NCBI GenBank assembly: GCA_963924565.1
Contig: OZ004615.1
Location: 20,522,001-20,586,000 of the forward strand
DNA from: Ascidiella aspersa
Lineage: Eukaryota
Direction: 5' to 3'
Length of the DNA stretch: 64,000 bases
Shown: positions 6,601 through 61,100 of the stretch, piece after piece
Layout of the letters: each line of letters begins with the position of its first letter
How positions within the stretch are numbered: the stretch's first letter is position 1
Position numbers and translations under genes: made by a program
The notes under the pieces: generated by a model
Told to the model about the DNA's origin: nothing
Databases searched by the model: none
Seen by the model: only the letters and a program-made list of their open reading frames with translations

Positions 6601-7026
6601 ATAAGTAGGAAAAGCAAAATGTTAGCCCATCATTTTACGTAAAAATTGAGGCTCATTCCAAGTTGGGATGAAATTAATTATGGCAAAGTTTAGTTGGGCA
6701 ACTTAGTAGTCTATTGGTCACGAAAAATTTTCCCAACTACTCGGGTCGCTTAAATACTCAATTACCATCATTTGTCGATTGACTTAAAATGATAAAAATT
6801 ATAAATAACAATCTATCTCGGTTTTATTTTTTTCTCCAAAAAACACGAGCTATGGATGCCCAGTAGCTTACAGCCAAATCGGCGGAGCTACGACCATGGT
6901 GGTGGCAAATAGGGCACTATCCATACAGCATATTGGTAATACCCCGCAGTTTACAAATATACCACTGAGCAAAACACCCTATAGTTACTCACTTAACGTT
7001 AAATTGTCTTACTTCTACGCCTATAG

Positions 7027-31100: not shown

Positions 31101-34100
31101 AAAAACAGATGTGGACCGAAAAATGTGTGGCCTTCACCTATGTCGTTACAGAGGCAAAATCCAATTTGATAGACAAATGCACACCCCAAAACTTTTCCTT
31201 GATTTGTTTCTGCAAGCAAAAACATTGACCGAAAATTTCTCGCATTAACTTTTTTTTTCACTCTTTTCGCTTAGATGCAAAAGAGATAGTTTGCCAAGGG
31301 ATGTGTCGATCTTATCGTTAAGAAAAAGCATTTTTTGTAATTTGTTCGTAATTTTTACAAAAAACAACATATATTTAATTAATTTTTTTATTATATCCTA
31401 CATTAAAAAGTAAGCCTACTAACTTATTGGTAACTTTGCTTGGATTTCTACAAAAAATAGTTAGTGTTGTAATGCCCCCCACCCCCTCAAACCCCCCAAA
31501 AAAATCATAACAATTTATTTTATTTTCCTTAAATTCAAGCTTAATTTAACCTATACATTCAAAAGGATGATAACATTTATTGGTTTTTGTTTACATCAAC
31601 CAAATATTTCATATTTACAAACATAATATCCTCAAAATAGATTTGAAGCAAAACCACAAAAAATGAATAGTTAAACGATAAACAAAAATAAACATTCTCC
31701 ATCGGGAGTAAATATTGTTTTGTTAATGAAATTTTTTTCAATACCCCTCCAAAGAAATGCATACTCCCAACCTTTTGTCCCAAACGAAAAAAATAAATGT
31801 ACAATGTACTTTAACAATGCTTTTTTTGTCTAAATTCAAAATAAATACAACCAACAGTTTTTCTCCTAAATAAACTTTTTGCATTAGTTTGCCTCAAAAC
31901 CACCAGATTGTTCGATTTTAGTTATTATTTACTCCAAAAAACAAACAAGATATTCGTAGTATCATTTTGATGGTTTACTAGCGATTTGTTTTACATTGAA
32001 GCAAGTTGGTTAATTATGAGTTCTCATTAATGTCTTTACCTCGACCAATCACCTAACTTCTTCATAGGGCAGATTGTAGAAAATTGTTCTTTCAGCTAAT
32101 GTCTTATTCTGATATAAATTCACTCGGTTTTCGTTGGCTTAAAGCCAGCAAGCAAAGCAGCCAGCAACAACCGTTCTGTTTATTGACTAGACATGACTGG
32201 TGTATATTCATATAACGCTCTCGCATATACAAGTTGAGAATTTGCATGAAAAAGAAAGGCGATACGGAAAAGCGGAAATGTTTTATAACCCGAAGCCTTT
32301 TTGGCAGCCGGGAACTGTGACAGCAACGTGTTCACACAGGTGAAATACTTTTATCTGTAACGGAAATATGTGTCACACAAAAACATTTGTCATGTGTGAA
32401 AACAGCCGAAGCTTTGTTCTCAGAGTGACAGCGAAAGTTTTCAATAAAAGCGTGAAAAAGTATCAACATAATGCACACTCAATAAACATTTGAAATACTC
32501 AATTAAACAACTGAAATACCCAATTAAACATCTGAAATGACCCCAGATGCTACAACATAAATAGCATATTGGCGAACACTGCAAAAGAAGGATATATTGA
32601 ATTCTGTAGTTACTATTAACTAGACAAATGAAAATATTTTTCGTGAAATATTTTTTAGGTGCAATTTACCAAATTCGTCTTTTAAATACGACAATAAACA
32701 GGTATAAACATTAAAAATACATTTTCGCGCTTTGCGCAAAATCACTTAACTTAAGATGCTTGTTAGCGCACCGCTTCGCGTGGAAACAGCAAGTTTTTTA
32801 CAATTTAGAAACGTTGCGAGTCACAATGCTTTCCTGCGTTGTACGGTGGGTGAAACTTTATTACATGGCCTTGCCTCTATATTTATTACCGCGACAATAA
32901 ATTCAAATACGACGGTACGACGTATTTGGGGAACAAATACATTTGATAAATAGATTTTATGCAGATGATGCGTACGGCGATATTGTTAAATTTTGGCCAG
33001 CTAACATGTTTAAAAAGCAAATATAATTATTCTCTTTAAATGGTTTAACGCCTGTGGTACACTATACTTTTACCAATGTATTGCTAAGACGGGCCACTTC
33101 GCATAATAAACGTAGCGCGCGCGGGACAATAAAGCGCAGCACGATGCTAGCCGCTTTTTCGCTTGGCGAGCTAAACAAAGCAAGCGATAAGAACGATTTC
33201 TGTATGAAGTTTTTCTGCCGCTAGATAGGATTCGATTGCTACAAACAGCTAAAACGATGACGTCACAACATATTATGTTTTTTGCCCTCAATCAAAGGCC
33301 CCTAGGGGTGCAGCCTCATAAACCTCTAAATGCGCACTTACATACCACTCTACGTCATGTCTAAAAATTTAGAAGTACTGCAATGTACAGTTGTACACTT
33401 TTACTATAAAGCTTCGGACCAATAACATACCTAACACCAAAAAAAAATAACGGCAGTAACAAGAAAAAACACGAAAATAAATTTTCGGCACATATGACTA
33501 GAATTATCTAGTAGCCCAAGTCTTGATTAGGACACTATAGATTTTACAGCGAGAAATGTGATTTAATTTCTATGTTGATGACGTAACAATGCCACTGTTT
33601 TTCTTCCAATTACGCAAAATGTTGCTTACAAAAAGCACATGGCGCAAACTCGAATCTTAAGGTTTTTAACTGTAAATGGGTTCTTTCTGTGCTAAATATC
33701 TGTTGATTAGTCGGATTAGGAATTTGGGAGCTTATTAATACTACGGTTGTTTGTTTAGTCATTTATTGATAAACTTTAAACTGAAACTGAAATTTAGCCG
33801 TGCATGTTTATATCCAAGTTAATCCTGGATCCCTAACAAGTTTCTAAGTACAGTACATTAGTTTTGCGGTGGCCTAGACTTGGAAAACGACCGTGTTACG
33901 AACCGGCTTCCTGGATAAACACTGCGGCAAGCTTAAAAAAGTAAAATATTTTTTCAATTAGCAATTTTATTTATTTAACAGGGAAATTAGTGTAACCATT
34001 GTTTCTTCTATGTTAGAATTGCTTTACATAGCTTATTGTTAAAATTAAAAAAATAAATTTCTTTTTTTTTTTCTTAACATAAAACGACAAAGCTTCAACG

Positions 34101-37100
34101 TAAAAAATACATAAATCGTTAAGAAACCGGGGTTCAGTGGCCCCTAGCGATTTAGAATGGCCTAATTTTGCAACACAAATAGACCGACATAATTGTACAA
34201 CACTTACAATCGGGTCGTACGCGGAGCCGATTGGTTATTGACCGTCGGTGCCGTTGGCGCGTTCGAACTGCGCTTGCAGCAAGAACCGAGCTTACACAGA
34301 GCGCCGCTGATGGTGTCGGAATAAATCAAAGGGTTCAGGGCGCTGTTGGTCGGCAGTAGGATCCCGGCGCTTATAGCGTACACGACCGGGGGCAAATGCA
34401 CCCCCGACAGCTGCACAAAGGCCAGGGTGCAGAGCGGAACCCAGCAAGCAAAGTCGGTGAGAATAAGACGCGAAATGCGCGCCTGCATTTTCCTGGCCCG
34501 CTTGCTAACGGTGCCAGCCATTCGCACGCTGACGCGGTAGATGGCAAAGTAGCAGACGACCATGTAGAGGAAAAGCACAAAGTTGAGACTGATTAGGAAG
34601 CAGGAGAAAACCCAACCCGCCTCTCCGACGTTGACGAAAATTCGCGGCATGCAAACGCTCGTTTCGCCGTAGTAACCGATGTCGCCCTTGATGGGCAAGT
34701 AAGGGATCTTGCTTTCGATAAACTGCTTGGTCGCCATCCACGACGAAGCGTTGATTTGCCCCATTCTAAACGCGAGCGCGTTTAAGTCGGATTTTTTCAC
34801 TTGGTCCGATTTGTAAAAGTAATTGGGGAACCAGACCCCTGAAACAAAGTAGCCGGAAGTGGGGAACATTAGCGGAAAAGTGGCAATCAGGGCGGCCAAA
34901 ATCCAGGACGCAACAACCGCCATTCGTCCCCAAACAATTGTAAGAGTGGAAGTGACGAAAGGTCGTAGAATGGTGACGAGGCGAAACGTGGTCATGGACG
35001 TCATCACGAACACCGAGTTTTCTGTGGAAAGCACGACTAGGACTCCCAGAAGGGAGCAAAGCCGGCTCGTGCGCCAAGACTTATCGTGAAAGCAGTAAGA
35101 GCCCGAATACTGGTCGGCCTTGACGCAAACGGTGAGAAGGTAAATGCCCATGAGGAAATCCGAAATGGAGAGGTTGAGAACAAACAGCGAGTTGTACTGC
35201 ATCGGGATTGACATCGGCTCGGCTGCCAGGAAGCTCCTCGCCGTGGTGACGGACACCACAATGTTTCCGGCGATTGAAAGCAGCGCCATCATCCAGAAAA
35301 TGGCCAGGATTAATTTGTTGCCGATCAGTTCGTACTGGGACGAAAATACGTTGACTTTTTGGCTTTTGGGAGGACACTCGTCGCTGCCGTCAGAACAGTC
35401 CCACTTGCCATCCTCGACGTCGCTTATCGGCACCGAAAGCGGCTTTTTATCCAAACAGTAAAAGCGTTTGTCGGCGCAGCGGGCCTTGGACTCGTCGGCG
35501 CCGTTTTCGCAGTCGACTCTACCGTTGCACAACTCGTCCACGTCGATGCTCACCGACACGCCGTTGACGCAGTAAAAGCGCTCGGAGCAGTTCTTCTCCT
35601 CGAAGCCGAAGGGACAAGAAGCGTTTTTGATGACATAAGCGGCCGAGTCGTTCTGCCCGTTGCAGTAGCGATCCCCCATCGGGTAATACCAGCGACAGGG
35701 ATCGTCGCAGAACCACGGCCTGGTCGAGCAGTTCACACATTCGTCGGACATGTCGGCGCACTGAGGCCGCCCGTCGCACATCACGGCTTCGATCCAACCA
35801 GGCGCCGCCACGCAACGGATCGTAGCCCTGCCTTTGGTATCGACGCAGCCGACCGTGTTGGTCTTGTCGACGCACTGGTAGCTCCTGTTGCACAGCAGCT
35901 CTTCGCTTGGGAGGCAGCCAACAGTTTCGTCGCAGTAGAGTTGGTCTGGATGCTGACAGCGCGTCTTGGACACCCCCAGCACCTTGTCGCAGACTGTTTG
36001 ATCGGCGCAGAAACACTCGTCGGAAAGGTCGTAGCAGTCCACCACCCCGTCGCACACCTGCCTGGGCGCTATGATCAGCTTCTTGTCGAAGCATTGAAAG
36101 CAGCGCATCGCGCCGTCGACGAAGCACAAGTCCGAGCCGTCTGAGCACTGCGGCAAGTCGTCGTAGAGGTTGAGCTGCGGCAGACTGCAGGTGAAAGTCG
36201 AGTACTTGGTGGCGCATTTGAAACCTGGCCCGTAGTGCGTCTCATCGCTAAAGTCGCTGCACTGGCTGTTGCCGTCGCAGAACTGACGAATAATGAGCAC
36301 CTCCTTGTTTTTGCACAACACTGGCTTGATGCAGCCGGGCTGGCTGGCGGCGGGCGGCGAAGAAATACAGGCCCATTCCGGCGTCTGCTTCCCGATCGTG
36401 TTGTTTACGTAGGTCACGGTGAGCACCGGATGGCAGTGGGTCAGCGAGGCGTTCTCAAAATGCAGCATTGCGTTTTTTGCGTGCAAATCCGGACAGCTCA
36501 TGGCCTTGGTGCTCCAATTGTCGGCGCAGTCGTTCATTCCGACCACACAGGGCTCGTCATCGCCGCTGTAGCAGTCTATCATTCCGTTGTTGACGTCGGA
36601 AGTGGAAATACACCCCTTGTCCGAAGTGCAGTTCGAGCTTGCGTTAAATATGCAGCCGCACTTGACCTGGCCGATCAAACACGCACAGCCCTTCTCGTCG
36701 CTCCAGTCGCCGCACTCGTTCACGTCGTTACAGAGCTGCCAGGGAAGCACGCATCCGTTGCTGGTGTTGCACGTCTTTTCGACAGCCTCGTAACACGCGC
36801 AAGGCGTTTCGATGGGCAGGCAGGTGCAGCCGTATTCGTCGCTCCAGTCGCCGCAGTCGTTGTAGCCGTCGCATTGTTTACTTGCGCTTACGCAGCCGGG
36901 CGATCGGCCACAACCCGGGCGACTGCACCGGCACTGGAAGCTGTACTCCGGGCAGGTGCAGTTATTTTCGTCGCTCCAGTCGCCACAGTCGTTTACCAGG
37001 TTACAGCGCCTGACGCCGGCCACGCTTTCGGCTTTACAGGAAGACAGCACCGTCGGTCGAACGCTGCAAGCGCAGCGGAAAAAGGCGCAGTCGGTTTCGT

Positions 37101-40100
37101 CGCTGCCGTCGCCGCAGCCGTCAACGTGATTGCAAACGTAGCCTCCATTCACGGCCAGCGTCCGTCCCGGGCAGGATTCCCCGCATGCGCACACGAAAAG
37201 GCTTGCACCATATGTACAGTTGCGCTCGTCGCTACCATCTACACAGTCCTTGTATCCGTCGCACACCCAAGACGACCTAATGCACCAGGTATCCCCAGCG
37301 CAAAAGGTCGAATTCGGTTTGGCGCATTTGCAGCCAAAGTTGGGCGCCAGGCACTGACAGGAACGCTCGTCCGAGTGATCCGAGCACTGGTAGACGCCGT
37401 CGCAAACCTTGTACGCTGGCAACTTGACGATGTTATTCGTGCAGCTCCGGTTTCGAGAGCAAGCGCACGTGAACAAACTTGGTCGATCATCGCAGCCCGC
37501 TTCGTCGCTCCAATCCCCGCAGTCATTGAGCCCGTTGCATTGAGCTCTTTTGTCAACGCATCCCGCCGAAGTCTTGCAGCCCGACCAGTTACAATCGCAC
37601 GTAAACTGGCTAAAATGGCAAGGACATGCCACCTCGTCGCTCCAGTCGTGGCAGTCGTTTCTTTGGTTGCAAACCTCGACCCAAGCAACGCGTCGAGTAC
37701 TGGGCGTGACGCATGTGCCGTTCCGCGCGCATGCGCAGTAGAACTGGACCGCTACAAAGTCGCAGTAAAGCTCGTCGCTTCCGTCGGCGCAGTCGTCTCG
37801 GCCGTCGCACTTGTTGATCAGCGGAACGCAGCTGATCGGATCCGTGCACTTTCCGTTTGCGTAGCGGCAACCGCACGAAAACTGACCGGCGCATTGGCAG
37901 TCGGCCTCGTCGCTTCCGTCGGAACAATCGCTTTTGCCGTCGCAAGTCTGCCGCTGCAAAACGCACACCTCAGGGTAGACGCACGTGTTGTTGTCCTGAC
38001 ACGCGCAGCTAAAATACCCAGTATCACAAGTACATCCACGCTCGTCTGTCCCGTCCAAGCAATCCAGCACACCATCACAAATCTCTTTATCGCTGTAGCA
38101 TCCTCGACCGTAGTAGCAGTGGTATGTTCTTAGCGGGCAGCCGCACTGGTAAAGGCCAGGCGCGCAGAAGCAGTTCAGCTCGTCGAAACCCTTGAGACAG
38201 TCGCCCCCGCCGTCGCAAACCCAGTTCTTAGGGATGATTTCCGCTTTGTAGTTGCCCCTGACGCTGAAGTAGTAGCCGCTGAGGTATTTGGTCCGGGCCG
38301 GGCACATGCAGTTCACCATGCTGCTAGCTGGATCCAACCGCACGGCGTTGCACCATTCTGCAAACAAAGTGGTAACCCATTTGTGGAGTTGATTTTTTGT
38401 AATACTGCAGTTTATAGGATTGTTATGTGCGACCATTACGACGTATTCTCGTGGGTCGGAATCGGAACTCGGGACTCGAGTAAGACCACGTACAACTACC
38501 CGAGTCCCGAGTCCGACGTGCGTATGCGCAGTATCAATTTTTATAACTGTTAAGGCGGCAAAATGTAAGTTGTAAAAGTGTAATAGCATATGTGAACTAT
38601 TTTTAAACCATGTAATGCGTGTGGATCAATTATGACACCAATATGAGTCGATTGCAAAAAATCCACCTTAATTTAGTTGCGTAAATGGGTAAAATACAGG
38701 CTGTAGAGTCGGGCTGGACTCGGGACTCGACAAAATCTTACATTTGGCCGGAGTCGTACTCGGGTGTATTTTTTTGGCCGGAGTCGAACTCGGGAGTCGG
38801 ACTCGGGAGTCGAACTCGGGAGTCGGACTCGGGTTGTTTTTAACCGACTCCACAGCCCTGGTTTATATAAGCGTGACTCTTACAGGGGTGCTGTATTCAT
38901 TACTTGTGTTCTAATACGCCGTGGTGTTTAGCGTGCGGTTTTGCCCCACCAGTAGATATTACACTTTTTATACGCAAAGCTAAGGAACAGGAATACGTTA
39001 AAGTGAAGTTTTGCAATTAGGGACTTGCGATAAAGTTTTTTGTTATGCACGTACTCGAACTTTTGGTTTAAAGTTGTACGACTCTCCAAACTGAAACCCG
39101 TTGACATCATTACTTTGGTCAAGTAAATCAAATTAAAGAAATTGGAAAGTCCAATGGCAATATTTTCCAAGGTTTACGGTTTGTTAGGAGGCTTATTGAT
39201 CTTCGATTTATCTGCTCAAAATTGCTTTTTATACTCAAACTAGAAAACGTTGCTTCAAAACCATATCTCAAAATGTACCAATTAGTTTAGTATGGGATCG
39301 GTACCGATACTATAGTCTAATATCGAACGAGTAGCGATACTACCACTTGGTATCGGGTTTTGGTAAATTTGCAATAAGGAGTGTCCGATTTGATCGGAGC
39401 TAAATCGATATTTAATACCAAACGGAAAATATCGACAACTGGGTGGAATAATGTTGATTCGAAACGACATTGACAAAAGTATTTCAGCGATGTTTTTTTT
39501 ACGAAGCAACATTTTGTACTTGGAGATACAATTCTCTAAAAATTGATGGGAGATTAGGATTAACGTGTGTTTTTCTCCACTTTTAATATTGGTCTTACCG
39601 GTTACATAGAATCATATTCTTGTTTAGTCAGCAAACTTTTAATAAGCAGATAAAACGAATATATATGATATAAGTACGGTTCCGATATTAATATTACGTT
39701 CTGTTAGCATCTAGGTTGGAAAACGCCTTGTCGGGTGTAACTGACTGATGCCTAATCCAACCTAAAATGCTAATGATTATCACTTTTGATTTGGTTCAAT
39801 GTCAAGTACGCTCTCTATTTTTCTGTTTACGATACATGGTCAAACCCCTTAGGGCATAACTGCGGGTTAATATTTCATCCATCGAACTATTTATGTGCTT
39901 TGTTGGCAACGACTAATACAGAAAGTCGACACAATAGGCAAAATTATATTTCAAGGGGATGTTGTAACAACGGAAAACCGATTGAAATGACAATCAAAAA
40001 ACATGTAAATAGCCAAGAGAACGGCTAAAGGTAATATCAACCTACTGTAATATTCAATCCATCCAATTGGCTCACTTCCATCCACGGTAATTTTACTTTC

Positions 40101-43100
40101 CAACAATATTCCAAGAAGTAAAGCACGGCAAAACGATGGTAGATATTGCATGAACGAACTAAACGCCGCCTTTTGCATTCCTTTGGTTCAGTCTATTCAG
40201 TTTGCTGCATTACAGTTTTCCAAACCTGAAACTACTAATGAAAAGCTTAGGCGCACAGGGAATTTGATATTAAAGGCATTATCCTGTTCAAATAAATGTT
40301 ATGACATGTTTATGCCTACGGCACTCCAACGATTCCACTTAGGCGAAAAAATAAGCCATTATATAGTCGAATAAAACTCAAACTTTAATTTCTCATTACT
40401 TTGCCTACAAACATATGACACTTCTTTTTTTGTTCTAACATCTGTTGAACAATCCACTTGCTTGCTGCCAGTGCCTGTAGCTGCTATACTTCCACCGATG
40501 TGGTTCGTTTGGCCAATACAGTGAATTTCAACCTTTTGAGGTTTACGATACTCTCTATAAAATTTGTTTTACATTGAAGAAAGTTGGTTAATTACGAGTT
40601 CTCATTAATGTCTTTGCCTCGACCAATCATCTAACTTCTTTATAGGGGAGATTGTAGAAAATTGTTCTTTCAGCTAATGTCTTATTCTGATATAAATTCA
40701 CTCGGTTTTCGTTGGCTTAAAGCCAGCAAGCAAAGCAGCCAGCTACAACCGTTCTGTTTATTGATTAGACATGACTGGTGTATATTCATATAACGCTCTC
40801 GCATATACAAGTTGAGAATTTGCATGAAAAAGAAAGGCGATACGGAAAAGCGGAAATGTTTTATAACCCGAAGCCTTTTTTGGCAGCCTGTGACAGCAAC
40901 GTGTTCACACAGGTGAAATACTTTTATCTGTAACGGAAATATGTGTCACACAAAAACATTTGTCATGTGTGAAAACAGCCGAAGCTTTGTTCTCAGAGTG
41001 ACAGCGAAAGTTTTCAATAAAAGCGTGAAAAAGTATCAACATAATGCACACTCAATAAACATTTGAAATACTCAATTAAACATCTGAAATACTCAATTAA
41101 ACATCTGAAATGACCCCAGATGCTACAACATAAATAGCATATTGGCGAACACTGCAAAAGAAGGATATATTGAATTCTGTAGTTACTATTAACTATACAA
41201 ATGAAAATATTTTTCGTGAAATATTTTTTAGGTGCAATTTACCAAATTCGTCTTTTAAATACGACAATAAACAGGTATAAACATTTAAAATACATTTTCG
41301 CGCTTTGCGCAAAACCACTTAACTTAAGATGCTTGTTAGCGCACCGCTTCGCGTGGAAACAGCAAGTTTCTTTAGAATTTAGAAACGTTGCGAGTCGCAA
41401 TGCTTTCCTGCGTTGTACGGTGGGTGAAACTTTATTACATGGCCTTGCCTCTTTATTTATTACCGCGACAATAAATTCAAATACGACGGTACGACGTATT
41501 TGGGGAACGATCGACAAATAGATTTTATACAGATGATGCGTACGGCGATATTGTTAAATTTTGGCCAGCTAACATGTTTAAATAGCAAATATAATTATTC
41601 TCTTTAAACGGTTTAACGCCTGTGGTACACTATACTTCTGCCAATGTTTTACTAAGACGAGCCACTTCGCATAATGAACGTAGCGCGCGCGGGACAATAA
41701 AGCGCAGCACGATGCCAGCCGCTTTTTCGCTTGGCGAGCTAAACAAAGCAAGCGATAAGAACGAATTCTGTATTGAAGTTTTTCTGCCGCTAGATAGGAA
41801 TCGAAAGCTACAGATAGCTAAAACGATAACGTCACAACATTTTATGTTTTTTGCCCTCAATCAGAGGCCCCTAGGGGTGCAGCCTCATAAACCTCTAAAT
41901 GCGCACCTGCAAACCACTCTACGTCATGTCTAAAAATTTAGAAGTACTGCTTTGTACAGTTGTACACTTTTACTATAAAGCTTCGGACCAATAACATACC
42001 TAACATAAAAAAAATAACGGCAGTAACAAGAAATAACACGAAAATAAATTTTCGGCACATATGACTAGAATTATCTAGTAGCCCAAGTTTTGTTTGACAC
42101 TATAGATTTTACAGCTAGAAATGTGATTTAATTTCTATGTTGATGACGTAACAATGCCACTGTTTTCCTTCCTATTGCGCAAAATGTTGCTTACAAAAAG
42201 CACATGGCGAAAACTCGTATCTTAAAGTTTTTAACTGTAAATGGGTTCTTCCTGTGCTAAATATCTGTTGATTAGTCGGATTAGGAATTTGGGAGCTTAT
42301 TAATACTACGGTTGTTTGTTTAGTCATTTATTGATAAACTTTAAACTGAAACTGAAATTTAGCTGTGCATGTTTATATCCAAGTTAATCCTGGATCCCTA
42401 ACAAGTTTCTAAGTCCAGTACATTAGTTCTGCGGTGGCCTAGACTTTTAAAACGACCGTGTTACGCCCCGGCTTCCTGGATAAACACTGCGGCAAGCTTA
42501 AAAAAGTAAAATGTTTTTTCAATTAGCAATTTTACTCATTTAACAGGGAACTTAGTGTAACCATTGTTTCGTCTATTTAAGAATTGTTTTACGATAGTTT
42601 TCACGCTTTACATAGCTTATTATTAAAATTAAAAAAAAAATTCAATGTCTTTGTTTTATCTATCATAAACGACGAAGCTTTAACGTAAAAAAGCATAAAT
42701 ATTTATCAAAGCGGAGTTCGATAGTCCCTGGCGATTTAGAATGGCCTCATCTTGCGACACGAAAAGACCCACACAATTGTACAACACTTACAATCGGGTT
42801 GAATGCGAAGCCGATTGGTTATTGGCCGTCGGTGCCGTTGGCGCGTTCGAACTGCGCTTACAGCAAGAACCGATCTCACACAGAGCGCCGCTGATGGTTT
42901 CGGAGTAAATCAAAGGGTTCAGGGCGCTGTTGGTCGGCAGTAGGATCCCGGCGCTTATAGCGTACACGACCGGGGGCAAATGCACCCCCGACAGCTGCAC
43001 AAAGGCCAGGGTGCAGAGCGGAACCCAGCAAGCAAAGTCGGTGAGAATAAGACGCGAAATGCGCGCCTGCATTTTCCTGGCCCGCTTGCTAACGGTGCCA

Positions 43101-49100: not shown

Positions 49101-52100
49101 TGGCCAATACAGTGAATTTCAACCTTTTGAGGTTTACGATACTCTCTATAAAATTTGTTTTACATTGAAGAAAGTTGGTTAATTACGAGTTCTCATTAAT
49201 GTCTTTGCCTCGACCAATCACCTAACTTCTTTATAGGGGAGATTGTAGAAAATTGTTCTTTCAGCTAATGTCTTATTCTGATATAAATTAACTCGGTTTT
49301 CGTTGGCTTAAAGCCAGCAAGCAAAGCAGCCAGCTACACCCGTTCTGCTTATTGATTAGACATGACTAATGTATATTCATATAACGCTCTCGCATATACA
49401 AGTTGAGAATTTGCATGAAAAAGAAAGGCGATACGGAAAAGCGGAAATGTTTTATAACCCGAAGCCTTTTTTGGCAGCCTGTGACAGCAACGTGTTCACA
49501 CAGGTGAAATACTTTTATCTGTAACAGAAATATGTGTCACACAAAAACATTTGTCATGTGTGAAAACAGCCCAAGCTTTGTTCTCAGAGTGACAGCGAAA
49601 GTTTTCAATAAAAGCGTGAAAAAGTATCAACATAATGCACACTCAATAAACATTTGAAATACTCAATTAAACATCTGAAATACTCAATTAAACATCTGAA
49701 ATGACCCCAGATGCTACAACATAAATAGCATATTGGCGAACACTGCAAAAGAAGGATATATTGAATTCTGTAGTTACTATTAACTATACAAATGAAAATA
49801 TTTTTCGTGAAATATTTTTTTAGGTGCAATTTACCAAATTCGTCTATTAAATACGACAATAAACAGGGATAAACATTAAAAATACATTTTCGCGCTTTGC
49901 GCAAAATCACTTAACTTAAGCTGCTTGTTAGCGCACCGCTTCGCGTGGAAACAGCAAGTTTCTTTACAATTTAGAAACGTTGCGAGTCACAATGCTTTCC
50001 TGCGTTGTACGGTGGGTGAAACTTTATTACATGGCCTTGCCTCTTTATTTATTACCGCGACAATAAATTCAAATACGACGGTACGACGTATTTGGGGAAC
50101 GATCGACAAATAGATTTTATACAGATGATGCGTACGGCGATATTGTTAAATTTTGGCCAGCTAACATGTTTAAAAAGCAAATGTAATTATTCTCTTTAAA
50201 TGGTTTAACGCCTGTGGTACACTATACTTCTGCCAATGTTTTACTAAGACGAGCCACTTCGCATAATGAACGTAGCGCGCGTGGGACAATAAAGCGCAGC
50301 ACGATGCTAGCCGCTTTTTCGCTTGGCGAGCTAAACAAAGCAAGCGATAAGAACGAATTCTGTATTGAAGTTTTTCTGCCGCTAGATAGGAATCGAAACC
50401 AACAAACAGCTAAAACGATAACGTCACAACATTTTATGTTTTTTGCCCTCAATCAGAGGCCCTAGGGGTGCAGCCTCATAAACCTCTAACCATAACACCA
50501 AACAAAATAACGGCAATAACAAGAAATGACCCGAAAATAAATTTTTGCCCAAGTCTTGTTAGGACACTATAGATTTTACAGCTAGAAATGTGATTTAATT
50601 TCTATGTTGATGACGTAACAAAAATGTTGCTTACAAAAAGCACATGGCGCAAACTCGTATCTTAAAGTTTTTGGTAAATGGGTTCTTCCTGTGCTAGATA
50701 TCTGTTGATTAGTCGGATTAGGAATTTGGGAGCTTATTAATATTACGGTTGTTTGTTTAGTCATTTATTGATAAACTTTAAACTGAAAGTGAAATTTAGC
50801 TGTGCATGTTTATATCCAAGTTAATCCTGGATCCCTAACAAGTTTCTAAGTCCAGTACATTAGTTCTGCGCTGGCCTAGACTTGGAAAACGACCGTGTTA
50901 CGCACCGGCTTCCTGGATAAACACTGCGGCAAGCTTAAAAAGTAAAATGTTTTTCAACTAGCAATTTTACTCATTTAACAGGGAACTTAGTGTAACCATT
51001 GTTTCGTCGCTTTACATAGCTTATTGTTAAAATTAAAAAACAAATTCAATGTCTTTATTTTATCCATCATAAACGACGAAGCTTTAACGTAAAAAAGCAT
51101 AAATATTTATCAAAGCGGAGTTCGATAGTCCCTGGCGATTTAGAATGGCCTAATCTTGCGACTCGAATAGACCCACACAATTGTATACAACACTTACAAT
51201 CGGGTTGAATGCGAAGCCGATTGGTTATTGGCCGTCGGTGCCGTTGGCGCGTTCGAACTGCGCTTACAGCAAGAACCGATCTTACACAGAGCGCCGCTGA
51301 TGGTTTCGGAGTAAATCAAAGGGTTCAGGGCGCTGTTGGTCGGCAGTAGGATCCCGGCGCTTATAGCGTACACGACCGGGGGCAAATGCACCCCCGACAG
51401 CTGCACAAAGGCCAGGGTGCAGAGCGGAACCCAGCAAGCAAAGTCGGTGAGAATAAGACGCGAAATGCGCGCCTGCATTTTCCTGGCCCGCTTGCTAACG
51501 GTGCCAGCCATTCGCACGCTGACGCGGTAGATGGCAAAGTAGCAGACGACCATGTAGAGGAAAAGCACAAAGTTGAGGCTTATTAGGAAGCAGGAGAAAA
51601 CCCAACCCGCCTCTCCGACGTTGACGAAAATTCGCGGCATGCAAAGACTCGTTTCGCCGTAGTAACCGATGTCGCCCTTGATGGGCAAATAGGGGATCTT
51701 GCTTTCGATAAACTGCTTGGTCGCCATCCACGACGAAGCGTTGATTTGCCCCATTCTTAACGCGAGCGCATTCAAGTCGGCTTTTTTCACTTGGTCCGAT
51801 TTGTAAAAGTAATTGGGGAACCAGACTCCTGACACAAAGTAGCCGGAAGTGGGGAACATTAGCGGAAAAGTGGCAATCAGGGCGGCCAAAATCCAGGACG
51901 CAACAACCGCCATTCGTCCCCAAACAATTGTAAGAGTGGAAGTGACGAAAGGTCGTAGAATGGTGACGAGGCGAAACGTGGTCATGGAGCAAAGCCGGCT
52001 CGTGCGCCAAGACTTATCGTGAAAGCAGTAAGAGCCCGAATATTGGGCGGCCTTGACGCAAACGGTGAGAAGGTAAACGCCCACGAGGAAATCCGAAATG

Positions 52101-55100
52101 GACAGGTTGAGAACAAACAGCGAGTTGTACTGCATCGGGATTGACATCGGCTCCGCTGCCAGGAAGCTCCTCGCCGTGGTGACGAACACCACAATGTTTC
52201 CGGCGATCGAAAGCAGCGCCATCAGCCAGAAAATGGCCAGGATTAATTTGTTGCCGATCAGTTCGTACTGGGACGAAAATACGGTGACTTTTTGGCTTTT
52301 GGGAGGACACTCGTCGCTGCCGTCAGAACAGTCCCACTTGCCATCCTCGACGTCGCTTATCGGCACCGAAAGCGGCTTTTTATCCAAGCAGTAAAAGCGT
52401 TTGTCGGCGCAGCGGGCCTTGGACTCGTCGGCGCCGTTTTCGCAGTCGACTCTACCGTTGCACAACTCGTCCACGTCGATGCTCACCGACACGCCGTTGA
52501 CGCAGTAAAAGCGCTCGGAGCAGTTCTTCTCCTCGAAGCCGAAGGGACAAGAGGCGTTTTTGATGACATAAGCGACCGAGTCGTTCTGTCCGTCGCAGTA
52601 GCGATCCCCCATCGGGTAATACAAGCGACAGGGATCGTCGCAGAACCACGGCCTGGTCGAGCAGTTCACACATTCGTCGGACATGTCGGCGCACTGAGGC
52701 CGTCCGTCGCACATCACGGCTTCGATCCAACCAGGCGCCGCCACGCAACGGATCGTAGCCCTGCCTTTGGTATCGACGCAGCCGACCGTGTTGGTTTTGT
52801 CGACGCACTGGTAGCTCCTGTTGCACAGCAGCTCTTCGCTTGGGAGGCAGCCAACAGTTTCGTTGCAGTAGAGTTGGTCAGGATGCTGACAGCGTGTCTT
52901 GGACGTCCCCAGCACCTTGTCACAGATTGTTTGATCGGCACAAAAGCACTCGTCGGAAAGGTCGTAGCAATCCACCACCCCGTCGCACACCTGTCTGGGC
53001 GCTATTATCAGCTTCTTGTCGAAGCATTGGAAGCAGCGCATCGCGCCGTCGACGAAGCACAAGTCCGAGCCGTCCGAGCACTGCGGCAAGTCGTCGTAGA
53101 GGTTGAGCTGCGGCAGGCTGCAGGTAAAAGTCGAGTACTTGGTGGCGCATTTGAAACCCGGCCCGTAGTGCGTCTCATCGCTAAAGTCGCTGCACTGGCT
53201 GTTGCCGTCGCAGAACTGACGAATAATGAGCACCTCCTTGTTTTTGCACAACACTGGCTTGATGCAGCCGGGCTGGCTGGCGGCGGGCGGCGAAGAAATA
53301 CAGGCCCATTCCGGCGTCTGCTTCCCGATCGTGTTGTTTACGTAGGTCACGGTGAGCACTCGATAGCAGTGGGTCAGGGAGGCGTTCTCAAAATGCAGCA
53401 TTGCGTTTTTTGCGTGCAAATCCGGACAGCTCATGGCCTTGGTGCTCCAATTGTCGGCGCAGTTGTTCATTCCGACCACACAGGGCTCGTCATCGCCGCT
53501 GTAGCAGTCTATCATTCCGTTGTTGACGTCGGAAGTGGAAATACACCCCTTGTCCGAAGTGCAGTTCGAGCTTGCGTCAAATATGCAGCCGCACTTGACC
53601 TGGCCGATCAAGCACGCACAGCCCTTTTCGTCGCTCCAGTCGCCGCACTCGTTCACGTCGTTACAGAGCTGCCAGGGAAGCATGCATCCGTTGCTGGTGT
53701 TGCACGTCTTTTCGACAGCCTCGTAACACGCGCAAGGCGTTTCGATGGGCAGGCAGGTGCAGCCGTATTCGTCGCTCCAGTCGCCGCAGTCATTGTAGCC
53801 GTCGCATTGTTTACTTGCGCTTACACAGCCGGGCGATTGACCGCAACCCGGGCGACTGCACCGGCACTGGAAGCTGTACGCCGGGCAGGTGCAGTTGTTT
53901 TCGTCGCTCCAGTCGCCACAGTCGTTTACCAGGTCACAGCGCCTGACGCCGGCCACGCTTTCGGCTTTACAGGAAGACAGCACCGCCGGTCGAACGCTGC
54001 AAGCGCAGCGGAAAAAGTCGCAGTCGGTTTCGTCGCTGCCGTCGCCGCAGCCGTCTACGTGATTGCAAACGTAGCCTTCATTCACGGCCAGCGTCCGTCC
54101 CGGGCAGGATTCCCCGCATGCGCACACGAAAAGGCTTGCACCATATGTACAGTTGCGCTCGTCGCTACCATCTACACAGTCCTTGTATCCGTCGCACACC
54201 CAAGACGACCTAATGCACCAGGTATCCCCAGCGCAAAAGGTCGAATTCGGTTTGGCGCATTTGCAGCCAAAGTTGGGCGCCAGGCACTGACAGGAACGCT
54301 CGTCCGAGTGATCCGAGCACTGGTAGACGCCGTCACAAACCTCGTACGCTGGCAACTTGATGATGTTATTCGTGCAGCTTCGGTTTCGAGAGCAAGTGCA
54401 CGTGAACAAACTTGGTCGATCATCGCAGCCCGCTTCGTCGCTCCAATCCCCGCAGTCATTGAGCCCGTTGCATTGAGCTCTTTTGTCAACGCATCCCGCC
54501 GAAGTCTTGCAGCCCGACCAGTTACAATCGCACGTAAACTGGCTCAAACCGCAAGGACATGCCACCTCGTCGCTCCAGTCGCCGCAGTCGTTTCTTTGGT
54601 TGCAAACCTCGACCCAAGCAACGCGTCGAGTACTGGGCGTGACGCATGTGCCGTTCCGCGCGCATGCGCAGTAGAACTGGACCGCAACAAAGTCGCAGTA
54701 AAGCTCGTCGCTTCCGTCGGCGCAGTCGTCCCGGCCGTCGCACTTGTTGATCAGCGGAACGCAGCTGATCGGATCCGTGCACTTTCCGTTTGCGTAGCGG
54801 CAACCGCACGAAAACTGACCGGCGCATTGGCAGTCGGCCTCATCGCTTCCGTCGGAACAATCGCTTTTGCCGTCGCAGGTCTGCCGCTGCAGAACGCACA
54901 CCTCAGGGTAGACGCACGTGTTGTTGTCCTGACACGCGCAGCTAAAATACCCAGTATCACAAGTACATCCACGCTCGTCTGTCCCGTCCAAGCAATCCAG
55001 CACACCATCACAAATCTCTTTATCGCTGTAGCATCCTCTACCGTAGTAGCAGTGCTGTGTTCTCAGCGGGCAGCCGCACTGGTAAAGGCCAGGCGCGCAG

Positions 55101-58100
55101 AAGCAGTTCAGCTCGTCGAAACCCTTGAGACAGTCGCCCCCGCCGTCGCAAACCCAGTTCTTAGGGATGTTTTCCGCTTTGTAGTTGCCCCTGACGCTGA
55201 AGTAGTAGCCGCTGAGGTATTTGGTCCGGGCCGGGCACATGCAGTTCACCATGCTGCTAGCTGGATCCAACCGCACGGCGTTGCACCATTCTGCAAACAA
55301 AGTGGTAACCCATTTGTGGAGTTGATTTTTTGTAATACTGCAGTTTATAGGATTGTTATGTGCGACCATTACGACGTATTCTCGTGGGTCGGAATCTGAA
55401 CTCGGGACTCGAGTAAGACCACGTAAAACTACCCGAGTCCCGAGTCCGACGTGCGTATGCGCAGTATCAATTTTTATAACTGTTAAGGCGGCAAAATGTA
55501 AGTTGTAAAAGTGTAATAGCATATGAGAAATATTTTCAATAATGACACCAATATGAGTGGATTGCAAAAAATCCACCTTAATTTAGTTGCGTAAATGGGT
55601 AAAATACAGGCTGTAGAGTCGGAACTGGACTCGGGACTCGACAAAATCTTACATTTGACCGGAGTCGGACTTGGGTGTATTTTTTTTGCCGGAGTCGGAC
55701 TAGGGAGTCGGACTCGGGTTGTTTTTAAGCGACTCCACCGCCCTGGTGTATATAAACGTGACTCTTACAGGGGTGCTGCATTCATTACTTGTGTTCTAAT
55801 ACGCCGTGGTGTTTAGCGTGCGATGCTGCCCCACCAGTAGATATTACACCTTTTACACGCAAAGCTACGGAACAGGAATTCGTTAAAGTGAAATTTTGCA
55901 ATTAGGGACTTGCGATAAAGTTTTTTGTTATGCACGTACTCGAACTTTTGGTTTAAAGGTATACGACTCTCCAAACTGAAACCAGTTGTCATCATTACTT
56001 TGGTCAAGTAAATCAAATTTTTTTAGGAAAGTCCAATGGCAATATTTTCTAAGGTTTACGGTTTGTTAGGAGGCTTATTGATCTTCGATTTATCTGTTAA
56101 ATTTTCCCCCAAAATTGCTTTTTATACTCAAACTAAAAAACGTTGCTTCAAAACCATATCTCAAAATGTACCAATTAGTTTAGTATGGGATCGGCACCGA
56201 TACTATAGTCTAATATCGAACGAGTAGCGATACTACCACTTGGTATCGGGTTTTGGAAAATTTGTAATAAGGAGTGTCTGATTTTATCGGAGCTAAATCG
56301 ATATTCAATACCAAATGGAAAATATCGACAAATGGGTGGAATAACGTTGATTCGATACGACATTGGCAAAGGTATTTCAGCAATGATTTTTTTTTTTTTT
56401 ACAAAGAAACATTTTGTACTTTGGAGATACAATTCTCTAAAAATTGATGGGAGATTAGGATTAACGTGTTTTTTTTTTGTTTTTTTTTCACTTTAATATT
56501 GGTCTTACTGGTTACATAGAATGATATTTTGTTAGTCAGCAAACTTTTAATAAGCAGATAAAACGAATATATATGATATAATTACGGTTCCTATATTAAT
56601 ATTACGTTCTGTTAGCATCTAGGTTGGAAAACGCCTTGTCAGGTGTGTGGGTTTTAAGCACAATGAAAGAATATTTATTGCAAATATAGAAACGACAATC
56701 AGTACTTACAGGTACAGTACTTACGATATACGTATAATAATTACCTCCGTAACGTACGCGATCTGGACTCCACAATGAACAGTAAGCACCGCTCAACTAA
56801 CGATTTACAACATTTCTTATATAGCCTACATCGGACAGATGTGAGTAATTACTAATTCGTTAGAAAACGCGACACACAACACCTTAGGAAGTCGGCCATA
56901 CGACCAACGAAATTACAATACGCGACGGGAAATTAGAGTGACAGCATGAGCGATTCCGCCGACAGGCTGTTTACAGGCGGCCAGAGTTGATGGGGTCACA
57001 GAGTTCCAAACAATCCGCTACAATTCACTCTCCCTGCCTTTAAGTCAAAAGGTCCGAACAAACTTCATCTTCGTGGTGTTCCTCCTGCATGTCATTGTTC
57101 ATTGGATAATAGTGTCCTCCTTGTCGGCCGGCTTCTTGTAGCACAAGTCAGGAGCGGTGGCGACCTCCGAAACATAGATGACTGTTGTCCAACGATGAAA
57201 AAGCTCGCTTCGTACAAAGAATACCTCCGTAATCGAGCTGGTACTTTGTTGCTAAACGATCTGTGTAAAAATACTTACACCGGCGTTTAACAAACATGCG
57301 AATACAAGAAATGTACAGCCTACAATGCAGAAATAGAGCCGTAAAAATTGTAATTTACTGTTCAAAGGAAAAACCGTCAGTCAAATGCCTATAGAACCTA
57401 TCGTTCTAGAATACCGAAATCAAGGAAGTTAAAGGTGCTAATCTTTGAAACTCGAAAACAAAATTAACGCCATGCCCATTTTAAAAGTAATCCCTAAATG
57501 ACAGACACTTTAACCTTGGCGTAAAGGTTAAACTAAAAAGTTACACTATTGCAAGCTTGTAACTATTGCAAGCTTGTAACCCAAATGGACATGCGACGGT
57601 ACCTCAGCCGTCAGTAAGGTAAAAAGGCATCACGTGGCCTTGAAAACATCGGGAACTATGCCCGGAATACAAACAAAACGGTCAGGTATTTTAGGTGTGA
57701 TATCTCTGATCAAACACCGTAAACCATATAGGACCAGACTGCAGGTTAGCTGCAAACGGAAATGGCACTTTAGAAGGCACAACTTCTGGAAGTGTAAGAG
57801 ATAAATTTATCTGTTCATAGGCTTAGAGAATAGTTTACGAGAGAAGAATATTCTCTTGCGTAAAGTTTCACCTTTAACTTAACAAAAAGAAACGTAATTT
57901 TGCAAATGACTGAACAACTATGCCGTAAATTTAGTTTAGCTCAAACTTGGTTTTAAATCTGCATTGATCGACCGATATGACAACATTAAAACGTGCTCAT
58001 AATTTAGCAACAACATACTTACAATGGCGGCGGCTTAGAGAGAAAAACAGGCGTGTTGCGTAAAAAATTAAACAAAGCATGTATCAATATCTGGCAATTC

Positions 58101-61100
58101 ATAGCGCGCACAAAAATTACGAATAAACTATAGCTGCCATCCTACGTAATGAACCTATTGGTATAAAACAATTTGATTGGTGTAAGGCCCATCCCTGCGT
58201 TAGCGATGACCTTAAGCAATATGCGCCAAAAATTACCCAAAAACGCTCACAAAACGTCTATCATAAAAACTAGCAAGAGGCTGAGAATAAGGGGAAACAA
58301 AGTTTAGGAAAGTCGAAGGTTAGAATAGTAATAGGCCGAATATAGATAAGGTAAAGTGAAGTTATGAAAGCTTACTAGATTATCATCAGGTGTAAACGTC
58401 GTAGGAAAGTGCTGCTTCCTTCGCAACAAATACGAACGGTTTTCTTGCAAGCAGTTAAGTCGGGCGGACGTTTCCAAGCACCGTAAAACTCAGCAACATC
58501 ATATGGTCGGCAAGAAATCCTGTCTGATAAGATTATAGATAAGCATAGGTGTAAAAGATAGGTTTCGAGTACCTTTAGAATAGAAATTGACGTAGAATTG
58601 CATGACGTCATAGATGTGTCGAATGTAGCAGATCGAATAAACTCGCGTTGTTGACGAGGCGTCGCATCTACAGTTGAAAGTTTGCTGCTGGGCGTTGCTG
58701 CAACAGACTGCAAAGATTTAAACGGAACAATAATAGGTTTTGCCGTGCTGCAAAACGACGAAGAAGCGGCTTCGAAAGTTGAATTTGGTTGGTCGTTGTC
58801 AAACTGCAGGTCAGCTGAAAGAGAAGCTGCAGGTTGAGAAACAGAATCGTTAGACGAGATTGGCACTGCAATCGGTGGAACAACTTGAACCGATGGCATT
58901 AGAATATCATTTTCTCTAGATTTCTTACGAAAAAACAAGTTTACGAAAAAGAAACGAAAAAACAAGTTTAGGAAGAGAGCTAATACCTATAGTTGCGGTC
59001 GACGAAGCTTGATAGAAACGTTCGAATTCATGCCCCTATCACCCGGAAAACTTTTACCTTTCTTAATATTACCTAGCATGGCAGCTAGACGCGTTGACGT
59101 TTTGTTGTTGCAAGCTTTAAGTTTGCTTGAAACCTTTGAAAAGAATGCAGAAAAATTATTCTTCGACATAACGATTTAAAAAAGAATAACACACGGAAAA
59201 TAAGACTAAAAAAGGGTGCAAAAGCGTAGGTTACAAATAGATTTAAATCAACACAATTGGTTAATATTAATTATTTTAGAATATTAGTTAGTCAGAAGGT
59301 ATATGCGTGTTCAGTACCACTAGGGCGTCTCCAATTTGTGGGGCGCAGCCACAATGGAATAATGTTTATTGCAAATATACAAACGACAATCAGTACTTAC
59401 AGGTACTTACGATATACGTACAATAATTACCTCCGTAACGTACGCGATCTGGACTCCACAATGAACAGTAAGCACCGCTCAACTAACGATTTACAACATT
59501 TCTTATATAGCCTACATCGGACAGATGTGAGTAATTACTAATTCGTTAGAAAACGCGACACACAACACCTTAGGAAGTGACAGCATGAGCGCTTCAGCCG
59601 ACAGGCTGTTTACAAGCGGCCAGAGTTGATGGGGTCACAGAGTTCCAAAGAATCCGCTACAGGTGTAACTGACTGATGCCTAATCCAACCTAAAATGCTA
59701 ATGATTATCACTTTTTTTTGGTTCAATGTATAATGCGCTCTATTTTTCTGTTTACGATACATGGCTTAAAGTCAAACCCCTTAGGGCATAACTGCGAGTT
59801 AATATTTCATCCATCGAACTATTTATGTGCTTTGTTGGCAACGACTAATACAGAAAGTCGACACAAAGGGCAAAACTATATTTCAAGGGGGTGTTGTAAC
59901 AACGGAAAACCGATTAAAATGACAACAAAACCATGTAAAAAGCCAAGTAAACGACTAAAGACAAATCCAACCTACTGTAATATTCAATCCATCCAATTGG
60001 CTCACTTCCATCCACGGTAATTCTACTTTCCAACAATATTCCAAGAAGTAAAGCACGGCAAAACGATGGTAGATATTGCCTGAACGAACTAAACGCCGCC
60101 TTTTGCATTCCTTTGGTTCAGTCTATTCAGTTTGCTGCATCACAGTTTTCCAAACCTGAAACTACAATTGAAAAGCTTAGGCGCACAGGGAATTGGATAT
60201 TAAAGGCTTTATCCTGTTCAAATAAATGTTATGACATATTTATGCCAACGGCACTACAACGATTCCACTTAGGCGAAAAAATAAGCCATTGTATATAGTC
60301 GAATAAAACTCAAACTTTTATTCCTCATTACTTTGCCTACAAACCTATGACATTTAGTTCTAACATTTGTTGAACATGAAGCATGCGGGTTTAATTACAA
60401 GTCTCATTAAACTAATTTGCCTCAATCAATCAACCTCGCTATTTCTTCAATAAGCATTGCTGTAGTCTGATTACAAATCCACACAGTTTGTGTTGGCTAT
60501 TATGGGCAAACCGGCAAATGCCGGCAAGCACAACCACTCACTGTATTGTCTAGACAAGACTGGATATATATTGATATAACGCGCTGCTTATAACAAGGTG
60601 AAAATTTGCATGACAAATTGCGACATTTTACAGCAGCTTACTTCTCAAAAAGGAGCGGAAGTTTTTACCTGGCGATTACTCACTGTGAAACGTGCCGAGA
60701 GACATTTCACAGGCGGCGAAAAGCGGAAATAATAAGTCATAATATACATTAGTCATATGTGAAAGAACCTGGACTCCCGGGTCTCAAGCGGCAGCAGATA
60801 CAGAGAATGCTTTTAGTAAAAGGCGAGCAAGAATGACAAAATCATAATCATAACATATTTGATAAATGCACAGATTCTATAAACGTTTAAAATATTCAAT
60901 TAACCTCTAAATTGACCCCTGTCGCTACAAACAATCCACTTGCTTGCTGCCAGTGCCTGTAGCTACTATACTTCCACCAATGTGGTTCGTTTGGCCAACA
61001 CAGTGAATTTCAACCTTTTGAGGTTTACGATACTCTTTATAAAACACAAACAGTTTGAGATATAACCTTACTGGCAATGTCGCTAAGTGGTTAACTGTAA

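Follow-up and report, generated by a model that had tools for sequence, protein, structure and literature searches.

How does a receptor with a seven-helix domain of the LGR type detect a ligand when it has no leucine-rich repeats (LRRs), the part that binds the hormone in its best-known relatives? The question is raised by a stretch of 64,000 nucleotides of Ascidiella aspersa DNA (assembly GCA_963924565.1, contig OZ004615.1, positions 20,522,001 to 20,586,000 of the forward strand), referred to here as the window. It contains a tandem array of three closely similar genes for very large G protein-coupled receptors (GPCRs), in which a long series of LDLa modules precedes the seven-transmembrane domain (7TM). 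The best explanation as a whole, and one that we hold to be fairly probable, is a cell-surface receptor whose LDLa array senses the ligand and in which a switch of the RXFP1 type, formed by the hinge and extracellular loop 2 (ECL2), drives the 7TM.

Ectodomain, hinge and seven-helix domain

Each gene consists of two exons on the minus strand, a 133-nt exon 1 and an exon 2 of about 4.15 kb. The two join in frame and without a stop in all three copies, giving proteins of 1428, 1428 and 1409 aa, which agrees with the three genes of about 1430 aa proposed in the initial annotation. By alignment the proteins are 97–98% identical. Protein searches were queried with exon 2, and the joint of exon 1 to exon 2 was checked for its reading frame. 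Coordinates in this section are those of copy 1, on the minus strand.

The ectodomain is built of LDLa modules. Pfam matched Ldl_recept_a (E 9e-62) in 17 stretches, 12 and 5 in the two pieces in which the ectodomain was scanned, and a hidden Markov model (HMM) built from the gene's own modules found 19; the initial annotation had about 20. No LRR family was matched by Pfam in these two pieces even at E <= 10, in keeping with the original description. The ectodomain has 1002 residues, of which 13.5% are Cys and 4.4% Leu, and its longest Cys-free stretch is 28 residues; such Cys density and such short Cys-free stretches leave no room for an LRR solenoid. Two parts can be told apart. The N-terminal array (36550..38355; Pfam 12 stretches, E 3.8e-51) holds 13 LDLa-type modules, one about every 45 aa, in 8-Cys and 6-Cys variants with single-residue joints C6-x-C1. 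The membrane-proximal stalk of about 390 aa (35374..36549; Pfam 5 stretches) has six more LDLa-type modules set between further stretches rich in Cys, a layout that can be made out in the sequences and alignment consensus of Ciona, Phallusia and other homologues. With the Ca2+ cage positions that we take to be those of LDLR module LA5, and with the motifs read by eye, the four-position side-chain cage is complete in 13 of about 18 acidic motifs.

An array of this kind could belong to an endocytic or scavenger receptor that takes cargo as LDLR and LRP do, the 7TM being mainly an anchor and internalisation device. The 17–19 modules and the 13 complete cages would suit such a protein, as would the loss of the acidic residue of the D/ERY motif and the label 'LDL receptor-related protein 1B-like' that NCBI and UniRef attach to homologues. 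We nevertheless regard this as unlikely. All G-protein microswitch residues are invariant in 64 family members, the 7TM has a ratio of non-synonymous to synonymous change (omega) of 0.1–0.3, and Pfam on the window protein returned LDLa, 7tm_1 and a sub-threshold PRKCSH-like match over LDLa-like sequence, with no EGF and no YWTD propeller.

The seven-helix domain with helix 8 (34264..35316) was delimited by a 7tm_1 match, a phmmer search of the PDB, an AlphaFold2 (AF2) model and Foldseek. When the 387-residue C-terminal part was compared by phmmer with PDB chains, RXFP1 came first (3.7e-19), followed by LHCGR (1.1e-18), TSHR (3.6e-17), FSHR (1.2e-16) and an LGR from C. elegans (7e-14); unrelated class A receptors appeared from about 1e-6. 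The AF2 model, which comprises the last two LDLa modules and the 7TM and was computed from an alignment of 64 sequences, has a mean predicted local distance difference test (pLDDT) score of 84.4 and a predicted TM-score (pTM) of 0.82. Foldseek of this model against the PDB gave LGR receptors as the first 35 of 35 matches (FSHR, TSHR, LGR4, LHCGR, RXFP1 and the C. elegans LGR; E 4e-12 to 8e-9), other class A receptors following from 1e-7. On both the sequence and the fold ranking the 7TM is assigned to the LGR type, as had been suggested from the letters alone.

RXFP1 is the closest match of the 7TM, of the hinge and of the ECL2 segment YYGxxxVC, and the window genes might on this account be taken for true receptors of relaxin or insulin-like peptides, functionally equivalent to RXFP1 and RXFP2. 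We consider this most improbable: the LRR domain with which RXFP1 binds relaxin is absent, the roughly 126 paralogues in the genome are far too many for a few relaxin-like peptides, and Kamesh et al. came to the same conclusion for Ciona (PMC2396169).

Between the last LDLa module (..SDGSDEC) and the first transmembrane helix (TM1) lie about ten residues and then VFSSQYELIGN (35317..35349), which makes a hinge of about 20 residues. This motif aligns to ..SSLENLLAS.. of RXFP1 and FNPCEDIMGY of LHCGR. It is present in 30 of 30 sampled paralogues, and in 64 tunicate sequences the conservation of its F, S and I is 90% or more. In the HMMER alignment I-S-S-L-E-N-L-L of RXFP1 stands over F-S-S-Q-Y-E-L-I of the window protein. 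With the RXFP1 chain numbering, which is offset by one as inferred from the ECL2 residues named in bioRxiv 10.1101/2022.01.22.477343, both functional hinge pairs of RXFP1 thus have counterparts, F-S for I396/S397 and L-I for L402/L403. In RXFP1, L402 and L403 are required for activation, I396 and S397 autoinhibit together with the LRRs, the LDLa module is needed for signalling, and F564 and L566 of the ECL2 motif C-phi-P-phi, a motif stated for all LGRs, fill the orthosteric pocket (bioRxiv 10.1101/2022.01.22.477343).

The ECL2 of the window protein (34615-34866, about 85 aa) has in common with RXFP1 the segment YYG-x-x-x-V-C-(F/M)-P and contains CMPR (34636-34656) at the place of C-phi-P-phi. 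Across the family C and P of this motif are invariant, the first phi is M or L, and the second position is R, K or H, then x-F. About 40 residues of the loop are without counterpart in RXFP1; in the AF2 model the loop is confidently predicted as a hairpin and two helices. The D/ERY position of TM3 reads FRL (34978-34986); the RXFP-like hinge and the FRL triplet are both present as first noted. CWVP lies at 34435-34446 and NPLIY at 34321-34335. Among 64 family members N1.50, D2.50, R3.50 and W4.50 never vary, nor do the Cys and Pro of ECL2, the W and P of CWxP or the N and P of NPxxY.

These features also bear on another possibility. RXFP1 deprived of its LRRs has high basal activity, which depends on ECL2 F564 and hinge L402/L403 (bioRxiv 10.1101/2022.01.22.477343); the window genes are without LRRs, have kept the hinge pair and, like the rest of the family, never have D or E at 3.49. 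They might then encode a constitutively active or ligand-silenced receptor, in which the 7TM signals via its own ECL2 and the LDLa array is an inhibitory cap, removed or reinforced by ligands, shedding or clustering. The counterparts of the inhibitory I396/S397 (F-S) are likewise conserved, however, and an ectodomain of about 1000 residues under purifying selection is more than a cap requires, which makes this rather unlikely in our view.

In the reading that we prefer, that of a sensing array coupled to an RXFP1-type switch, the LDLa modules would bind protein or lipoprotein ligands in a Ca2+-dependent manner via exposed basic residues, as in LDLR and LRP. Binding would shift the membrane-proximal modules, which would stand in for the LRRs, against the hinge and the enlarged ECL2. 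The hinge/ECL2 switch would then activate the 7TM as in RXFP1, by way of the F-S and L-I pairs and C-M-P of ECL2, and the 7TM would couple to a G protein through the invariant N1.50, D2.50, R3.50, W4.50, CWxP and NPxxY. That the array is a sensor for lipoprotein-like ligands is plausible and was already proposed in 2008 for Ciona, where lipoproteins or large protein complexes were the ligands speculated upon (PMC2396169).

Several observations weigh against this reading. An acidic residue at 3.49 is seen in none of the 30 paralogues and public homologues, which have F, Y, C or Q there, next to an invariant R3.50. The basic residue at the second phi position (CMPR, CMPK) may mean that the switch works differently or that the receptor is constitutively active. 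The N-terminus encoded by exon 1, with a hydrophobic core ALLLGILL, is what we take for a putative signal peptide, and it falls below textbook quality. Lastly, when 6% of an RNA-seq run labelled with the same species was set against positions 36800-42790, the depth was zero over most of exon 2, and support for exon 1 and for the splice junction was not seen. Within exon 2 a depth of 2.5–3.5x was reached at 37400-37799 alone, by reads whose strand is the one that a standard stranded library would give for a minus-strand gene; no splice joint was seen in that run, and its remaining reads lay on repeats. No indexed RNA run matched the window sequence. Expression, which the initial annotation had put forward as a check, has thus been looked at in one run, in which coverage is not convincing. 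The Ciona receptors described below are represented by expressed sequence tags (ESTs) mostly from blood cells (PMC2396169), and these Ciona ESTs alone suggest haemocyte expression.

Gene models and history of the array

Repeat finding and blastn of unit 2 against the window gave three head-to-tail units of 8.58 kb that span 31984-60376, with identity blocks of 97%, 98/92/96% and 94%. All are on the minus strand: unit 1 at 31984-40561, unit 2 at 40562-49152 and unit 3 at 49153-60376, the last enlarged by a transposon-like insertion of 3.0 kb (56647-59661) that is found within intron 1 of copy 3 only. The tandem array first placed at 31985-61044 is therefore real but ends near 60376. GC islands of 0.53–0.59 mark the gene copies vs 0.33–0.40 around them, and the window sequence is without any N.

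In copy 1 (minus strand, as are all three) exon 1 (40046..40178) starts with ATG, has 133 nt and ends in a phase-1 donor, A|GTAGGT. Intron 1 (38358..40045; 1688 nt, GT..AG) carries an element like a miniature inverted-repeat transposable element (MITE) of high copy number. Exon 2 (34204..38357; 4151 nt coding plus TAA) encodes the mature ectodomain and the 7TM in a single exon. Copy 2 has exon 1 at 48637..48769 and an intact exon 2 at 42788..46941. In copy 3, exon 1 (59976..60108) is separated by an intron of 4685 nt, a length due to the 3.0-kb insertion, from exon 2 (51194..55290), whose frame is open and which has a 57-nt in-frame deletion at 51986-51988.

The acceptor of copy 1 at 38358/38357 is canonical, ctttgtttgcag|AATGGTGC (tttgcag|AATGGTGC), and coincides with a step in GC, exon 2 having 0.58 vs 0.36 in the flanks; similarity to diverged paralogues elsewhere in the genome starts exactly at this position. 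About 1.7 kb upstream of the acceptor lies a 500-nt island that is conserved with a paralogue on chromosome 7 and contains the ATG exon, and this paralogue has kept the length, phase and donor of copy 1 exon 1. Other members of the subfamily have a first exon that ends in W-x-x-Y-(Y/F) with a strong phase-1 donor. Because copy 1 exon 1 is homologous to these first exons, we take it to be 133 nt long and to end A|GTAGGT. Exon 1 and the splice sites are intact in all three copies.

Other models were considered and set aside. The minus-strand open frames are longer than exon 2, running over 34204-38589 (1461 codons), 42788-47173 (1461) and 51194-55576 (1460). The whole 1461-codon frame was rejected as a protein because paralogue conservation begins at the acceptor and the part upstream of it is repeat; its first 77 codons are intron and high-copy MITE-like sequence. 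A shorter exon 1 of 82 nt ending A|GTAAAA was replaced by the 133-nt exon, which accounts for the conserved 60 nt that had been taken as intron. Long open frames on the plus strand over the genes (up to 1035 aa) were read as antisense frames rather than as genes. These frames, at 36235-38133, 44819-46717 and 52292-55399 with 632 to 1035 codons, are exactly codon-aligned over the genes, and we attribute them to a codon usage with 0.73 GC at third positions (GC3) and few TTA, CTA or TCA codons.

Some further features of the units may be recorded here. The MITE-like element occurs in intron 1 of each copy (38695-38860, 47280-47445 and the equivalent place in unit 3). It is flanked by TA, its terminal inverted repeats read CAGGGCTGTGGAGTCGG .. 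CCGACTCTACAGCCTG, and a 13-nt sequence, GGAGTCGAACTCG, is repeated inside it. With a DNA word depth of about 1e5 at 38400-38999 it is among the commonest repeats of the genome, and its translation is the false N-terminus of the long open frames. The GC3 of the window genes (34207-38357) is 0.73 vs 0.37–0.53 in six other family members (loci L005-L027), which could be the outcome of biased gene conversion in the array or of a local compositional effect. In the C-terminal tail (34207-34300) helix 8 is followed by a cluster of Cys residues, GSCCK, and the last residues are -TRL; this ending would fit a class I PDZ-binding motif and is kept in the chromosome-7 paralogue.

Among the three copies synonymous divergence (dS) is 0.04–0.06 and omega 0.16–0.21 by the Nei-Gojobori method. 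Divergence from the chromosome-7 paralogue is greater (dS 0.40), with an omega of 0.27 in the N-terminal array vs 0.13 in the stalk and 0.15 in the 7TM, and in two other clusters omega is 0.2–0.47 for the ectodomain and 0.12–0.3 for the 7TM. Selection on the window genes is purifying. Whole-domain estimates of omega are below 0.5 everywhere and reveal no domain-wide positive selection; for the ectodomain an omega of 0.2–0.47 speaks for purifying and not diversifying selection. In the clusters on chromosomes 6 and 2 (loci L014-L030) the ectodomain has 2–3 times the dS of the 7TM, e.g. 0.36 vs 0.21 and 0.57 vs 0.18, which suggests gene conversion of the signalling half or module shuffling in the sensor half.

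The middle copy is a mosaic. At informative sites of the aligned units copy 2 has the variants of copy 3 below about 44681 and those of copy 1 above 44726, which places the switch point at 44681..44726, and the patchy dS along the copies is consistent with this switch. It is the exact pattern that would be expected if the middle copy came from an unequal crossover between two older units (A; B-left/A-right; B). Together, the mosaic copy and the duplication point to growth of the array by duplication and then unequal crossover. The low dS and the mosaic copy support the recent amplification that was originally supposed.

Copy 3 has since lost 57 nt between two TCC triplets, a microhomology, and with them 19 residues of TM3; it gives no 7tm_1 match at E <= 0.01. 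Since the core of TM3 is deleted, this copy is probably non-functional although its frame is open. The three receptor genes initially described are thus two intact genes, copies 1 and 2, and a third that is probably disabled.

One may go further and ask whether all three copies are silent recent duplicates on the way to becoming pseudogenes. RNA coverage is essentially absent in the run examined, copy 3 has its disabling deletion, and a transposon-like 3-kb insertion sits in its intron. Yet the 4.28-kb frames are open in all three copies, synonymous changes per site exceed non-synonymous ones five-fold (omega 0.16–0.21), and exon 1 and the splice sites are intact in 3 of 3 copies, while the RNA is from a single library sampled at 6%. 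We consider such a fate for the whole array distinctly improbable.

A 196-codon minus-strand open reading frame (ORF) at 58375-58965, inside the 3.0-kb insertion of copy 3, is without significant Pfam match. Pfam on two stray ORFs of the window gave nothing bearing on the receptor array, and an Rfam scan of the window gave no match. An isolated ORF of 129 codons (6896-7282, plus strand) has a sub-threshold MFS_1 match (E 2.4e-5); it probably belongs, as an exon, to a transporter gene that lies upstream of the array. Just past the end of the array lies a tandem repeat with a period of 24/47 nt (61861-62150; about 12 copies, 75% matches).

The family in the genome and among tunicates

Among public proteins the closest come from Ciona intestinalis, Phallusia mammillata, Clavelina lepadiformis and Styela clava, with Ciona proteins as the best hits; they carry only PF00057 and PF00001, and no public protein exceeds 48% identity to the window 7TM. 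An LRR family of Pfam is listed for 0 of 41 tunicate homologues. A HMMER search over 1.8 billion representatives gave 239 clusters at E <= 1e-30. The best non-tunicate matches, at 25–29% identity, are GRL101-like receptors, which also bear LRRs. A quick IQ-TREE search separates the LDLa-only receptors of tunicates, as a clade with an SH-aLRT of 100, from the GRL101-like proteins that carry LRRs; for human RXFP and glycoprotein hormone receptors, the relation to the family is taken from the rankings of PDB matches by sequence and by fold. Within the tunicate clade the sequences of the A. aspersa genome fall into clades of their own, separate from a Ciona clade, and the expansions would therefore be species- or lineage-specific and independent of that in Ciona.

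A family of this description is known. Kamesh, Aradhyam and Manoj (2008, BMC Evol Biol 8:129; PMC2396169) reported 14 confirmed LDLRR-GPCRs in Ciona, with 1–10 LDL-A repeats, no LRR and a transmembrane region like that of the INSL3/relaxin receptors. The window genes have LDL-A modules, no LRR and a 7TM of this INSL3/relaxin-receptor-like kind, and they group with the Ciona members, on which sequence features we assign them to the LDLRR-GPCR family. The initial annotation was right that LDLa-repeat GPCRs had been reported in Ciona and were orphans, and in the literature searched we found no later paper on the family after 2008; it is still orphan. Its interpretation had been anticipated in large part by the 2008 paper on Ciona, and receptors of the same architecture with 17 modules exist in Phallusia. 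Four points go beyond this literature: how large the family is here, that it expanded independently, that hinge residues of the RXFP type are conserved, and that ECL2 is enlarged.

The census of the family was made by six-frame searches of the whole 308.6-Mb assembly with three queries, the 7TM of a window gene and of two other subfamilies. They gave 107, 112 and 115 matches, all at E <= 1e-104, the second search adding 17 loci and the third 2. By our own comparison of the three result tables these amount to about 126 distinct loci. Hardly any has a stop in the 7TM, and their open frames run to 440–1900 codons; the number of loci, together with the species-specific clades, upholds the claim of an expanding receptor family. 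Most loci are in tandem clusters, among them those on chromosome 2 at 35.36-36.69 Mb (at least 20 loci) and 38.3-39.2 Mb, on chromosome 6 at 0.29-2.44 Mb (at least 16) and on chromosome 8 at 5.25-5.34 Mb (9 loci). In 30 of 30 sampled loci, Cys-rich LDLa sequence continues up to TM1, the hinge motif is present, 3.49 is non-acidic and the NPxxY motif reads NPL(I/L)Y.

A 'giant' subfamily of 13 loci, at least 67% identical, includes the window genes; its members have 15–24 modules, and module counts outside it rest on 4-kb loci. Its member L034 (G000:C1:30690500-30700400) has an open frame of 1907 codons and 24 LDLa-type modules, the highest count seen. By the same HMM, among the proteins counted, a Phallusia protein of 1371 aa and an unnamed one of 1477 aa have 17 modules each, those of Clavelina 12–13 and those of Ciona 4–9.

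It is possible, although we put it forward as doubtful, that LDLa arrays of variable length and an RXFP-type switch constitute in ascidians a GPCR recognition repertoire of about 126 genes for protein, lipoprotein or non-self ligands, for example on blood cells, which would be the first GPCR family with LDLa modules and not LRRs as primary ligand sensor. About 126 mostly intact genes, separately expanded per ascidian, are as many as one would expect in a repertoire for chemosensation or immune recognition.

Significance and relation to known systems

If these receptors signal, they would show how an LGR works without the LRR hormone-binding domain, and they would provide a test of whether the hinge/ECL2 autoactivation switch of RXFP1 is the ancestral core of LGR signalling. 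The family would be a concrete candidate for the sensing of many macromolecular ligands by these animals, which are relatives of the vertebrates. The value of the locus itself is more modest: it offers a clean and datable case of family growth through duplication, unequal crossover and the decay of one copy.

Among the closest known systems are the Ciona LDLRR-GPCRs. They have the same tandem N-terminal LDL-A modules, the same lack of LRRs and the same INSL3/relaxin-receptor-like 7TM, and they belong to the same tunicate clade; they too are a lineage-specific expansion of orphans for which lipoproteins or large complexes have been proposed as ligands. The window genes differ from them in having 17–19 modules vs 1–10 in the 2008 models and 4–9 in the current proteins counted, and the family differs in size, with 14 confirmed and 14 'unclassified LGR-like' members in Ciona vs about 126 loci here. 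Phallusia mammillata P0024 ('LDL receptor-related protein 1B-like', 1371 aa) and the unnamed P0025 (1477 aa) share the giant layout with 17 modules, the conserved stalk, a hinge ending ..FSSxxEMI.., FRL in TM3 and CMP in ECL2. Their 7TM, however, is just 43–44% identical to that of the window genes, and P0024 begins with an additional Cys-rich segment that has no equivalent in the window genes.

RXFP1 and RXFP2 (LGR7/8, the type C LGRs) share the LGR-type fold of the rhodopsin class, with RXFP1 as the best 7TM sequence match. RXFP1 also has the counterparts of F-S and L-I in the hinge and YYGxxxVC(F/M)P in ECL2, and its LDLa module takes part in activation. The window genes depart from both receptors in being without the hormone-binding LRR ectodomain, in having 17–19 LDLa modules instead of one, the last of which abuts the hinge, and in an ECL2 of about 85 aa with a structured insertion, CMPR in place of CFPL and FRL in place of E-R/K-Y. 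GRL101 of Lymnaea and the GRL101-like receptors of molluscs, annelids and cnidarians are the nearest relatives of the 7TM outside tunicates and have multiple LDLa modules, but all have LRRs (PF13855, PF12799), often with CUB or C-type lectin domains, and form a sister group in the tree. LDLR and LRP, finally, have arrays of LDLa modules with Ca2+ cages, likely the principle of ligand binding in the window proteins as well; they differ from these by a single-pass anchor, EGF modules and YWTD propellers, and NPxY tails, none of which was found in the window proteins.

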